A model generated the notes under the pieces. That model did not search any database. It had not been told where the DNA came from and saw nothing but the letters and a program-made list of their open reading frames with translations. A program made the translations under genes and the position numbers. Of a stretch of 21,855 nt of DNA, positions 14,055-21,661 are shown one piece after another (position 1 is the stretch's first letter; each line of letters starts with the position of its first letter). Origin of the DNA: Vitrella brassicaformis CCMP3155 (lineage: Eukaryota > Protista > Chromerida); assembly GCA_001179505.1 (NCBI GenBank), contig CDMY01000776.1, forward strand, positions 1-21,855. The letters run 5' to 3'.

Positions 14055-16210
14055 ATGCCTGTAGCGCCTTATCTGCTAGCCATTGGTGAGCGGGAGAGAT
14101 CCTTATGCCTCATCAAGCCAGATCTCATCGCTGGACAGAAGGTGACCAAGTGTTTCTTTGTCAACTCGGCAAAGAAACGAGGTCTTCGACTTTCAGGGCT
14201 GTGAAGTGGTTGCGCGTCTGGAGGAGGATGACTTCGAAATCAAGCAAAAGAAGATTGCATATCTCACAAAAGTAGGGGACAGGAAGCCATTGAAGAACGA
14301 TTTTGCCAGTGCCGGTCTGTAGGGTGACGTTGAAGCCCTCTTCACCGACTATCATGGACGGAGTGACTATTCGCAAAGGGTCGCCTTCATGACAAGGTCC
14401 ACGAGGGATGGCTTCCGCTGATGGCTTCAGGTCCAGAAGCCCGTCTCCCACTTCTATGTTCTGTTGTCAGTGGTCCCGTGTGGGTACTGGTGGTGGAGCA
14501 CTTGGAGGGAGATACTGTCAATAGACTCGCGGCCCTCGCAGGACCGAACGACCCGCAAGTGGCAGACGAAACGACGTATGCACTCACGGACGAGAAAGCC
14601 CTTCCAACAAGAACGAGAAGATGTTTCTTCCCCACAGGTTGCGGGGCCAGTATGGACACGACGAAGTGCGAAATGGCGTACATGTGAGCGCTGACAAGTG
14701 GGCAGCGGTGCGCGAAAGGGACTTCTTCTTCCCATACCGTAACATAGGCTTCATGGGAAGAAGCCTCTATCACAGCTGTGCATCCACGTGTAATTTGTCA
14801 GTGTGCGAGTGTCCCACTGAGCGCACGTTTGGCATGGTCAAGCCCGACGCCACATCGCATGCGGGAGAGATCCTCGATACCATCGGCAAAGAGAACCTGC
14901 TCGCCGTAGGGTGAGCAGGAAACAAGCGGGGCGAAATCTATTGGAATGGTGTGATGTGCCAGAATGTGTGAGCTAAAGCTGTCGGCGGCACAAGCTGAGG
15001 AGCTATACACAGAACACAAGGGCAAGGTGCGTTTCGACGACTACTGGACTGAGATACACAAAACGGCCTTCATACCTTTTTGCTCAGCCCTTTTACGATG
15101 GCTTGATGAGCTTCATCACCGAGGAGGCGGGCATCAGTAGGCGACCGTTGAGAAGTCCATCGACTCAATGTATCCTTCGTTTGCCCTCCTTTTTGGACAC
15201 AACGCAACTGTGTACACATGCAGTTGCGTTGTGTCTGGAGGGAAGAGGAGCGATCGAGCGGTGGAGACAATTATGCGGTCAGATCAACGCACGGCCCCTT
15301 CCACTGGCTTGCGGCTCCCGTCTTGTCCTTAGGTCCCACGGATCCTGACACTGCTCGCACTATCGCTCCATGGACGCTGCGCGCTCGATTCGGCACAGAT
15401 GCCACTAGAAATGCCGTGGTACGTCACCATCTAGACTCCTGTATACCCAAATGAGTGGAGTGCCTAGATTGGCTGTACAGCATGGATCGGATTGCCCTGC
15501 CAGCGCCGCACACGAGTTGAATATCTTCTTTCCCAAAGGTGATTTCGCGCTCATCCCGTTAGTATAGGCCTTTCGTATGGGCGCATGTTGTGTATCATGA
15601 CTTGCTTCTAGGTACCCTTCCACTGGAGCGGACGCTCGCCATCATCAAGCCGGATGCCGTCCAGAAGGGTACAGACACATAAATGTCAATTAAAAGGTAG
15701 CCCATCCATGCGTACACGCTCCCGATAGGTCATACGGATGCCATCTTGCGTCGTATCAAATCATCTGGTTTCGCCGTGCTCACACAAAAGAAGCTGCTGC
15801 TGACTCGTTCCCGGGCAGAGGAGTTCTACGCCGAGCATCGCGACAGTGCGTTCTTTCCCTCTCTGGTTGAGTTCATGTGTAGTGGCCCCGTCATCACCCT
15901 CGTGCTCGGTCGAACGGGGGCGGTGCAAGTGTGGAGGCAACTCATGGGTCAGTCAGTGAGATACAAAGAGAAGCATTCGGGCATTCATACATGGCCGCTG
16001 CTTCAGGTCCCACGGATAGCGTGCAGGCACGAGAGTCAAGACCGAAGTCGATGAGAGCCCTCTACGGCGCCGATCGACAGGTGACACTGTTTCTTCGGTT
16101 CCCCAATTACGCGCCATACTTTCATGCTGCCTGCACAGGCCAATGCCGTCCACGGATCGGATTCCGCCAAGAGTGCCGATCGTGAAATAGCCTTCTTTTT
16201 CCCGGAACTG
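14055..16210 (+). other. Three tandem NDK domains (about 14055-14738, 14802-15536, 15613-16210)
   Basis: Each has ERT/S-x-x-x-I/V-KPD, a GP-x-D/N loop, L/M-R-x-x-Y/F-G, N-x-V-H-x-S and E-x-x-x-F-F. Confidence 0.92.
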
Positions 16211-19200: not shown

Positions 19201-21661
19201 CACAAGAGTCCTGCAGACCTCCTTGCATATTGGGCAGGCTGTCGAGCTGCTTTCGATATTCAACGTCAATCGCCTGGTCCTGATCGGTGAGCCGTCATGC
19301 TGTCCGACGGGACCCAGCGCGGAGCCAGACCCCATACTGACCGAATTCGCCAGACAGGCATGTTGGCCACCCACCACTAGCCCGTCAGCGCAGCTATCAG
19401 GAATGTGTTCTGTGCCAGGGCAAGCTGGAGCACATCCCACAGAAGGAGAACGAGGAAGAGATGTTCAAGGACGTTATCGAGTGAGTGTTGTCGACAGGCA
19501 GACCCTGAACATAAGCGACGTGATCAACAGACGAGATACAATACTACATATGAATTTCACGCAGCTTTTGTATCTCACGCTGTATCCTCTCTACAATGCA
19601 GTCGTTTCGCTGCCAAGCTCCTCCTTGTGCAAGCCCCGCCTGCATTTCCGATCGGTACCTGTGCAAGCACACTCGGCGCCTTCGAATGCATCTTTGTGTG
19701 CTTTTCTCGAAGCTGATGTTGTGTCATGTCTGGCTGACAAGCTTGCGTTGACGCCACTGCCCCCCACGGGTAGAATGAAACTGCGTGGTCCACCAGGGAC
19801 TCCTGTCTACTCTGTGTTTGTCTTTAAGATGTGTTGCTAAAGGAGGTGATGGATCTCGGAGGTCCCCTTGGCGACGCACTTAAAGAGCACCAGACTCGCA
19901 CCAGTAGCCTGACAGCAGACGCCCTTTCCCCTGAGCTCCTCGCCCAGTCTCTGGATGCGTGGCTCGTCATGCAGCCCTCCGGCATAGGTGCTTTCATGGC
20001 CGCAAACCTCATTGGTGTTGCAGAACAGGTCTGGGACAAAATAGGATCCGAGCATTCCTAAAGGTACTTTCTGTCAACTAAATTTAGGTCGAGGCGTTAG
20101 AGGGCGTCAGGGTGAAGGCGATGGGATTGATGGAGCTGACGGCACCCAGCGAGGCATGAATGAACAAGTGTGACACGCAAAGTCAATCCGTTTATCTCTG
20201 AATGTTTGCTTCAGGCCTTGGCCGAGAGGGCGCAAGAGGCTGGAGGAGATGCCTTCAGTGCCGAGGACTTCGAGCAGGCCGTGAATCAGTACAAAGAGAG
20301 AATGGGTCAGCCTCGGATGTACAACAACAGCACGCAATACGCAGCCACGCCGTCTCCTTCGCTACATCAGATGCTATTACCAAACTGTTCGCTGGGCGGA
20401 ACGCGCACTACGTGGTGGATGCGACGGGCTTCCCGCCTCCCTGGGACCTCGCACAGGTCAAGCAGTGAGATGGGCTGGTGGCCTCAGTAAGCCCAGCTGT
20501 GTATTTTTCATTCAGAGTTTACTTGACAGGTCGAAGTTCCGTTCATCAATCCTCGTGGTGCCGCCTCTTCAAGGCCTCTCTGATGTCGTGGCGTCGAAGG
20601 TCGCTTTTGAAAGTAAAAATACTCAAACACGAGGAGTTGCTTGCTGGCAGATTACTGTCCGTGTCCTGTGGTCTTAGGTGGGTGTCATCTCCGGTACCTC
20701 GACGCCACGGAGTTATGTCACAAACGTAGGTGCCGACTTAGCTGATCTCTCCGGTGTCGACGCTCCTGCGAAATCTGCAGGGCGTCAAGGATGCAGTGGA
20801 GAGTTGGACCACCAGCTATACCTGTCGAAACTGGTGCAGCAGCAGGTACGCTGACCTCTTACCCACAGGCACATACCCAACGCTTGACATGGGATAACAT
20901 ATCAAGTGAGCCCTGACGTGTATCAACGCAGTTTGCTTCTGTTCAGGATATGAGGCCTTCCCCATCGTCTTTCGTGTCCGACATGTGTGACTGGGTGCCG
21001 AGATCCTTGTGGGCTCCGCTTCTCAAAAGCGCTATGCAGCAAGACTTCACTAAAGAATACCTGATCACCAATCTACCAACTCCGGTACATTGACACGTGT
21101 GCAATTACCTTTTCCTATGCTTGAATACATGCAGACCGGCATGGCTGGCAGTACCGCTACGGTCCGCGATCAGTATGATGCCATCTGCTACACGGCGAAT
21201 GTAGAAGGTCTGCCGAAAAGAGGAGCATGTTCCGTGTTGGCTGGCGGTGTCTTCCTTGTTTTGACCGTGTGCACGTTCAGGAGTGTACATATTCTCGTTC
21301 ACCGCCCATGCTCTTGAGCAGTGGCTGATGTCCCGCATATCTGGCTCACCATCAGACGAGACTGCTATCAAGGTATTGCCACATGATCCTCTCCTGCAGC
21401 GAAATGAACGAGAGCGGGAGAGTTGTGCTTTGTTACATTGGCCAGGCATCCGTTGCGAGCGCGCTTGATGCGGTCCGCGTGGTGGAGGAATTTCTACTTA
21501 TGGAGCTACAGGGGTCTCCAGCTCTTCATTTGCTCGATGTGCAGGTTCGTGGGGCAAAAGAGAACGAGAATATCCGGATGATTTTTGCGCTGACTCAGGA
21601 CCTTCCCCATGTCGATGACCTAGTGCAGCAGGTTGCAGAATCTCTCAGCGGAAAGGAGTAG
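14055..21661 (+). CDS. Multi-exon 3x nucleoside diphosphate kinase - Dpy-30 - adenylate/UMP-CMP kinase fusion with four further degenerate AK-like repeats
   Basis: ATG 14055 [23 protein letters not shown]. Three NDK units (IKPD/VKPD/IKPD starts; NGVHVS, NAVHGSD, NAVHGSD). Dpy-30-like [38 protein letters not shown]-loop [45 protein letters not shown]-like repeats continue to TAG 21659-21661. 3' junctions after about 20050 are less certain. Confidence 0.85.
16430..16635 (+). other. Dpy-30 (RIIa-clan docking/dimerisation) motif
   Basis: Spliced PTLQQILAK|[28 protein letters not shown] matches the NME5-type Dpy-30 pattern P-x-L-x-x-GL-x-x-L-C-K-x-K/R-P-x-x-P-x-x-W-L-A-x-W-L-x-x-N-N-P. Confidence 0.8.
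16890..17760 (+). other. Intact short-LID adenylate / UMP-CMP kinase domain
   Basis: PFIVFVLG|[23 protein letters not shown]-x-[43 protein letters not shown]. Confidence 0.92.

Follow-up and report, generated by a model that had tools for sequence, protein, structure and literature searches.

The window analysed here is the whole 21,855-nt contig CDMY01000776.1 of the chromerid Vitrella brassicaformis CCMP3155 (assembly GCA_001179505.1). Its forward strand carries, at 14055–21661, a coding gene of 47 exons and 46 short introns, henceforth the fusion gene, whose product contains from N- to C-terminus three nucleoside diphosphate kinase (NDK) domains, a Dpy-30 motif, one intact nucleoside monophosphate (NMP) kinase of the adenylate kinase (AK; Pfam ADK) fold and four further AK-like repeats. 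The original prediction, made from the DNA letters alone, had described this inventory between exactly these coordinates, which run from the start codon to the end of the stop codon, and its parts were recovered by Pfam, profile comparison, hhalign and structure models. Judged by domain order and homology, the Vitrella protein is an enlarged form of the Nme5-like fusion described and assayed by Perina et al. 2019 (PMC7024210) and a member of a conserved family of the stramenopile-alveolate-rhizarian (SAR) group.

Transcript structure of the fusion gene

The start ATG of the fusion gene is located at 14055 and the stop codon TAG at 21659–21661, with an in-frame TAA 21 nt 5' of the ATG. Joining of the 47 exons gives a coding sequence of 4,653 nt plus the TAG, and its translation is exactly that of P0152, a complete open reading frame (ORF) of 1,551 aa in the public MMETSP transcriptome. 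P0152 aligns colinearly, over 47 exons (14055–21658), with 100% identity to the window. It was placed by exact-match chaining, which superseded a tblastn search of P0152 against the window that recovered just 4 of the 47 exons at ≥95% identity. The introns measure 50–121 nt (median 62), and 43 of the 46 are bounded by GT-AG. The remaining three are GC-AG introns (17984–18041, 19358–19418 and 20154–20214), the first of which is directly supported by RNA contigs. Exons rebuilt by dynamic programming from splice motifs, the open frame and exonic counts per bin could be assigned without ambiguity to ~20.3 kb, and the ambiguous interval at 20.3–21.4 kb was settled by the exact mapping of P0152. Pfam analysis of the raw stop-to-stop pieces, which were too fragmented, returned NDK and ADK fragments only, with nothing past 17.8 kb and no Dpy-30, and was superseded by that of P0152.

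Approximately 42% of the sampled words of 14000–21700 were contained in 4 public runs, as expected of spliced mRNA; of the other runs, three contained 99–100% and one contained 75% of these words, as expected of DNA. Read contigs were built on 15700–21699 from the 4 RNA runs, which are culture-derived and belong to 3 studies; such contigs indicate the presence of RNA, neither its level nor the life stage. Each run yielded one spliced contig of 4.1–4.9 kb extending from NDK3 through the Dpy-30 motif, the intact AK and the AK-like parts to the 3' untranslated region (UTR). Each contig contained 34 splice joints of 54–73 nt, bounded by GT..AG with one GC..AG after a one-base shift. The longest contig reached 963 nt upstream of 15728, where 12 upstream exons, read by eye, total 919 nt, leaving a 5' UTR of ~44 nt. 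Additional contigs from ~21100 onward were observed in run X2.

The single spliced contigs (4 runs, 3 studies) and the colinear P0152 at 100% identity bear out the predicted single polypeptide on one spliced transcript and refute the reading that the NDK and AK parts are separate neighbouring genes or transcripts wrongly merged. More than 10 other genera moreover have single proteins with the same domain order, and the sole variation seen in the transcript was an intron-retention isoform at the 3' end, so that a merger of two genes can be dismissed with near certainty. The isoform (P0008, 1,503 aa; P0154) keeps the intron listed last in Table 1, stops near 21315 and truncates the fifth AK-fold domain. 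The deposited gene model (GenBank CEM33191.1, UniProt A0A0G4GRK0; 1,536 aa) is slightly wrong in the same part of the gene. It joins 21375 straight to 21545 and skips an exon at 21446–21544 that occurs in the transcript contigs and in P0152. The model can be corrected by restoring this one absent exon.

Domains of the encoded protein

The active-site motifs of the NDK domains were assigned by applying textbook knowledge to the alignment. NDK2 and NDK3 retain the full catalytic set, consisting of KPD, the tyrosine of F/Y-x-x-H, R-x-x-x-G-P-T-D-P, the arginine of T/S-x-R, N-A-V-H-G-S-D and the next Glu. NDK1 is the most divergent of the three and forms a long branch in the domain tree; it retains KPD, the N-x-x-H histidine and the Arg residues, with HVSA replacing HGSD and GPNDP replacing GPTDP. 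The best PDB matches of the NDK block were all axonemal group II NDKs, namely NME7/FAP67 (8e-56), RSP23 (4e-46), NME5 (4e-34) and TXNDC6. NDK3 together with the Dpy-30 motif (aa 288–512) was aligned to animal NME5 (PF00334+PF05186) over 96–98% of its length with 41–46% identity.

The Dpy-30 motif has the conserved core P-x-G-L-x-A-x-x-W-L-x-x-W-[LM]-x-x-N-N-P, and of the 21 family members scanned, 19 carry its first part, P-x-G-L-x-A-x-x-W-L-x-x-W-[LM], in the interval from NDK3 to the first AK. A profile of the Dpy-30 region from 19 family members matched NME5 (5.3e-11), Chlamydomonas RSP23 (5.1e-9), DPY30 (9e-8 to 1.5e-4) and AK7 (1e-3) in the PDB. Because this profile matches NME5 and RSP23 above DPY30 itself, the motif is considered real and, by profile score, is nearest to that of the radial-spoke NDK, the NME5/RSP23 type to which it had originally been assigned.

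The first AK domain, designated AK1 in Table 1, retains in the alignment the P-loop, DGFPR, the arginines of the NMP site and lid, and a short GRVDD lid. Its PDB matches were yeast uridylate kinase (8.5e-55), UMP-CMP kinases (~1e-50), adenylate kinase AK1 (7e-50) and AK5 (4e-38). By these comparisons the domain is a short-type NMP kinase, with scores so nearly equal that a preference for AMP or for UMP/CMP is not readable from them.

The AK1 domain is followed by four blocks of ~180–220 residues, D2 to D5, each directly abutting the one before. The P-loop lysine is absent from all four, where the corresponding segments read GGLGACTT (D2), HANGTSVS (D3), QAPPAFPI (D4) and VPPLQGLS (D5), and DGFPR with its arginine is likewise absent. 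D2 fell below the Pfam ADK threshold (aa 766–865, 25.6 bits against a cut-off of 26.8). With a local AK HMM, for which 26 canonical AK domains were taken from stramenopile-type relatives, D2 was significant (35.8 bits), D4 gave a weak but full-length match (13.3 bits), D3 gave a weak C-terminal fragment (4.9 bits) and D5 gave no match. Slices of a 16-member myzozoan-subfamily alignment, with Vitrella as the first row, were then compared by hhalign with the canonical AK profile. Full-length AK matches were obtained for the first domain at 100% (2.8e-72), D2 at 99.3% (6.6e-21), D3 at 98.8% (6.7e-17), D4 at 99.0% (3e-18) and D5 at 95.6% (1.2e-8).

As an independent test, AlphaFold was applied to D3 and D5 alone, whose support from sequence was the weakest. 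Both were alpha/beta folds whose best PDB matches were adenylate and UMP-CMP kinases. The D5 model (pLDDT 81, pTM 0.81) had AK5 2bwj as its best Foldseek match (E 8e-7, TM 0.62–0.71), and the D3 model (pLDDT 78) had AK1 3adk/7de3 (E 1.2e-4, TM 0.57–0.62). An R-D-Q in D5 is invariant across the subfamily. A feature search of the ESM Atlas returned generic AK1/AK5 and NDK clusters only (scores 0.79–0.83) and is regarded as a lead only.

By profile and model, D2–D5 are AK-fold pseudo-enzymes in which the fold is kept and catalysis is lost. Since the P-loop lysine and the DGFPR arginine are gone, these domains are predicted to be pseudo-enzymes, not relay stations. The consecutive NMP-to-NDP and NDP-to-NTP activities proposed in the original prediction were therefore sustained in part. 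Such chemistry on one chain is possible because NDK2, NDK3 and the first AK keep their catalytic residues, but four of the five AK domains would take no part in it.

Table 1 Features of the fusion gene in the window (positions on the contig; residues of P0152 in parentheses).
Feature	Position	Strand	Evidence or remark
Whole coding gene	14055..21661	+	47 exons, 46 introns; product of 1,551 aa = P0152
NDK domain 1 (aa 14–146)	14094..14734	+	Pfam PF00334, E 2.8e-29
NDK domain 2 (aa 154–287)	14819..15537	+	Pfam, E 3.1e-39
NDK domain 3 (aa 293–427)	15626..16207	+	Pfam, E 2.1e-48
Dpy-30 motif (aa 466–507), over two exons	16444..16626	+	Pfam PF05186, sub-threshold; family profile vs PDB
Pro/Ala/Thr-rich linker (aa 508–575)	16627..16899	+	16–31% identity to relatives; no Pfam match
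AK1, intact short-type NMP kinase (aa 576–765)	16900..17784	+	Pfam ADK, 4.8e-46 at aa 581–736
AK-like D2 (aa 766–945), degraded P-loop	17785..18644	+	Pfam ADK 25.6 bits, E 1.5e-5; hhalign 99.3%
AK-like D3 (aa 946–1147), no P-loop	18645..19614	+	hhalign 98.8%; AlphaFold + Foldseek
AK-like D4 (aa 1148–1330), no P-loop	19615..20524	+	hhalign 99.0%; local HMM 13.3 bits, full-length but weak
AK-like D5 (aa 1331–1551), no P-loop	20525..21658	+	hhalign 95.6%; AlphaFold + Foldseek; alignment
Intron retained in second transcript form	21208..21280	+	P0008, P0154

Family members and proposed function

With the NDK3 exon as query, many proteins of 1,300–1,700 residues were retrieved from 1.84 billion representatives, the matching NDK occupying the same place in each. 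Pfam analysis of six relatives gave two to three NDK and four to five ADK domains, except for P0008, the window's own isoform, which showed two ADK stretches; Dpy-30 passed the Pfam threshold in P0040 and P0042 only. Named family members comprise Chromera velia (1,580 aa, 34% identity over 91%), the coccidia Hammondia, Neospora and Besnoitia, the dinoflagellates Symbiodinium, Gymnodinium and Yihiella, Cafeteria, and the oomycetes Saprolegnia and Aphanomyces; many unnamed marine sequences also belong to the family. Identity between Vitrella and its relatives was 41–61% for NDK3, the Dpy-30 motif and the AK1 domain, and 15–27% for D2–D5. By these searches, the arrangement of three NDK domains, Dpy-30 and five AK-fold domains in ~1,500 residues is that of a conserved stramenopile-alveolate family, present in UniProt and NCBI under automatic names. 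The combination had originally been reported as not recognisable as a named protein, which does not hold, given that the simpler NDK-Dpy-30-ADK form is already known (PMC7024210) and the exact layout is visible in databases. A literature search found no paper on this exact layout or on any accession of the family.

Other arrangements of the same modules were also encountered. Triparma P0225 has three AK domains followed by two NDK domains. Among the environmental sequences P0236/P0238/P0282 and P0412, some combine NDK and ADK with a metallophosphatase and a 5'-nucleotidase C-terminal domain, and one combines EF-hands, NDK and Dpy-30. The multi-NDK proteins of the non-flagellated fungi Coemansia and Basidiobolus are devoid of ADK and represent a different architecture.

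The state of the AK domains varies across the family. Cafeteria and its metagenomic neighbours have DG[FY]PR in 5/5 AK domains and a strict P-loop in 3/5. In chromerids and most dinoflagellates DG[FY]PR and the P-loop are confined to the first AK, and Gymnodinium is without any DGFPR match. Because at least three AK domains look active in Cafeteria, these motifs are most simply explained by an ancestral array in which several AKs were active, with decay in the myzozoan lineage. In the coccidian orthologues P0280 (Hammondia) and P0409/P0410 (Neospora, Besnoitia) the protein is shorter or has diverged further. Hammondia P0280 has no match to the strict P-loop, DGFPR or N-x-x-H patterns, although its first AK still scores 84 bits against the AK profile and it retains the Dpy-30 core. 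The motif pattern of the coccidian orthologue suggests further decay toward a purely structural protein. The family forms a graded series, from Cafeteria-type proteins with at least three active-looking AKs through myzozoans with one to a coccidian orthologue that looks the most degraded, and it could show an enzyme array turning into a scaffold.

From homology and the organisms that carry the family, the fusion protein is probably an axonemal, Dpy-30-docked enzyme that buffers NMP and NTP pools and bears a non-catalytic D2–D5 arm. Both axonemal docking and an NMP-to-NTP relay are plausible on these grounds. In the proposed mechanism, the Dpy-30 motif would dimerise and clamp an amphipathic helix of an axonemal scaffold. 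RSP23/NME5 and RSP2 bind at the radial-spoke neck through their Dpy-30 domains, which would make RSP3 at that site the likeliest partner. The protein would thereby be placed in the flagella of zoospores or, in coccidia, of gametes. There the AK1 domain would interconvert AMP and ATP with 2 ADP, or act on UMP/CMP, while NDK2 and NDK3 would equilibrate ATP with other NTPs via phospho-histidine, so that nucleotide pools would be buffered beside the dyneins. D2–D5 would provide rigid spacing or scaffolding, or possibly an arm that binds nucleotide without catalysis.

Several observations weigh against this reading. The Dpy-30 motif of Vitrella alone is sub-threshold in Pfam (aa 471–505, 16 bits, E 0.0098, cut-off 22). 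An NDK-domain tree with an unresolved backbone, aimed at the origin of the triplet (of NME8/9 or NME7 type, or duplicated internally from an NME5-like domain), neither placed the fusion domains inside the NME5 clade nor grouped them with TXNDC3/6. In word-based searches, which are too insensitive to prove absence, Plasmodium, ciliates and green algae yielded no members, so the family does not appear to be a universal axonemal part. Chondrus crispus has an NDK-Dpy-30-ADK protein although it is without flagella (PMC7024210), and the fusion is therefore not strictly tied to cilia. Animal group II NME5, NME8 and NME9 show no measurable nucleoside diphosphate kinase (NDPK) activity (PMC7024210, PMC13256974), so that intact motifs are no proof of activity.

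The Chondrus protein also speaks for the alternative of a soluble, non-flagellar enzyme of nucleotide homeostasis, in which NMP and NDP kinase would be coupled for bulk NTP synthesis and the Dpy-30 motif would serve self-association only. Recombinant Nme5-likeCc from this flagella-less organism is multimeric and an active NDPK (PMC7024210; PMC13256974), and its expression in human cells gave a cytosolic protein (PMC7024210). The AK1 domain of Vitrella is equally near to adenylate kinase AK1 and to the UMP-CMP kinases of general metabolism, and RNA contigs were obtained from 4/4 culture-derived runs. A soluble enzyme is nevertheless considered unlikely. Four dead AK domains kept folded over long evolution would be odd in a bulk metabolic enzyme, among solved structures the NDK and Dpy-30 parts have only axonemal proteins as their nearest relatives, and flagellated stages occur in every named carrier of the full architecture.

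The catalytic residues of NDK2, NDK3 and the AK1 domain are fully kept in Vitrella, Chromera and the dinoflagellates, and these domains are the most conserved parts of the protein (41–61% against 15–27% for the dead domains), which argues for selection on activity. Together with the NDPK activity of the three-domain relative (PMC7024210), this makes it rather improbable that the protein is an axonemal structural component whose kinase folds are all vestigial building blocks with no relevant phosphotransfer. Such a role has been proposed for NDK5/RSP23 in Chlamydomonas, where canonical NDK activity is dispensable for assembly (PMC5662260). The structural alternative further draws on the missing NDPK activity of animal NME5, NME8 and NME9 (PMC13256974), on the pseudo-enzyme state already reached by D2–D5 and on the loss of strict motifs in the Hammondia orthologue.

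If the fusion protein is indeed axonemal, it would be a natural fusion joining the radial-spoke NDK (NME5) to AK1/AK5-type adenylate kinases. It would then support the descent of NME5 and AK5 from one split gene, with the two still working side by side, and the orthologues of Hammondia, Neospora and Besnoitia would be candidate microgamete flagellar proteins. A bolder and distinctly tentative extension, itself unlikely, is that the radial-spoke NDK of chromerids, coccidia and dinoflagellates might be this 171-kDa chain, which would bring an NMP kinase and a rod of four dead AKs into the spoke as an independently evolved counterpart of the AK7/AK9 hub at radial spoke 3 (RS3) of animals and ciliates. 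The rod would in that case act as a strut or as a local ADP/AMP sensor.

The remaining features of the window lie 5' of the fusion gene. An (AATG)8.5 microsatellite occupies 13916–13949, ~100 nt 5' of the start codon. An ORF at 10911–11738 (-) encodes a basic, Pro/Ser-rich product of 275 aa and may be part of another gene between a large secreted-protein gene and the fusion gene. A 39-nt tandem repeat of 2.3 copies is located at 11112–11200 in a GC-rich stretch at 11.1 kb. N runs (assembly gaps) at ~8690–9000 and ~9870–10170 explain the G+C dips at 8–11 kb and have no bearing on the fusion gene.

Comparison with known systems

The closest described system is the Nme5-like protein of Chondrus crispus. 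The two proteins share a group II NDK, a Dpy-30 motif and an AK1/AK5-type ADK in the same order on one chain. In Vitrella, as in Nme5-like proteins, an NDK is directly followed by Dpy-30, and the ADK C-terminal of the Dpy-30 motif carries a P-loop, an NMP site and a lid. Each module is present in single copy in Nme5-likeCc, against three NDK and five AK-fold domains in the Vitrella family, four of the latter dead in Vitrella, and the Vitrella protein is an estimated ~3–4 times longer (the length of Nme5-likeCc was not measured). The named carriers of the Vitrella family are flagellated SAR organisms, whereas Chondrus is without flagella. The three-domain Nme5-like form has been proposed as ancestral and later split into NME5 and AK5 (PMC7024210; repeated in the 2026 review PMC13256974).

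NME5/RSP23 is a radial-spoke protein, and the Dpy-30 domains of RSP2 and RSP23/NME5, according to work cited in PMC7024210 and PMC12399478, mediate radial-spoke assembly. The segment of NDK3 and the Dpy-30 motif of Vitrella aligns with NME5 over nearly the whole length of the segment, and residues 3–144 of RSP23 align with NDK3. In contrast to the Vitrella fusion, NME5 comprises ~210 aa with nothing after Dpy-30, and RSP23 has IQ motifs in place of the AK domains. NME5 is a primary ciliary dyskinesia gene.

Three tandem NDK domains are shared with NME8/NME9 (TXNDC3/TXNDC6), and chytrid and animal TXNDC3/6 were the strongest matches to the N-terminal 27% of the fusion protein (35–40% identity). 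NME8 and NME9 are, unlike the Vitrella protein, devoid of Dpy-30 and of an AK part. Membership in this group was rejected, as there is no thioredoxin domain and Pfam finds only NDK in aa 1–150. The Vitrella ORF begins at NDK1, with the in-frame TAA and the short 5' UTR upstream of it.

Among the adenylate kinases, the AK1 domain of Vitrella resembles AK5, AK1 and UMP-CMP kinase in its P-loop, NMP-site Arg residues and short GRVDD lid. In AK5 itself, a Dpy-30-like N-terminus precedes tandem AK domains (PMC7024210). Unlike AK5 and AK1, Vitrella has five AK domains in tandem without linkers, four of which lack catalytic residues. In being a large multi-AK protein with only some usable AK domains it resembles AK9; no AK9 chain appears among the best 60 PDB sequence matches listed for the AK1 domain, which are led by AK1, AK5 and UMP-CMP kinases. 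The Dpy-30 motif, in turn, is shared with AK7.

AK7, AK8 and AK9 are built into radial spokes, and the head of RS3 has been described as a metabolic hub, with LRRC23 blocking two of the three AK9 sites (PMC12399478; bioRxiv 10.1101/2025.05.19.654877). These three kinases, unlike the Vitrella fusion, have no NDK domains. Both the RS3 hub and the reading favoured here nonetheless envisage ATP being regenerated within the spoke itself, and the fusion protein may be a functional analogue of the hub.

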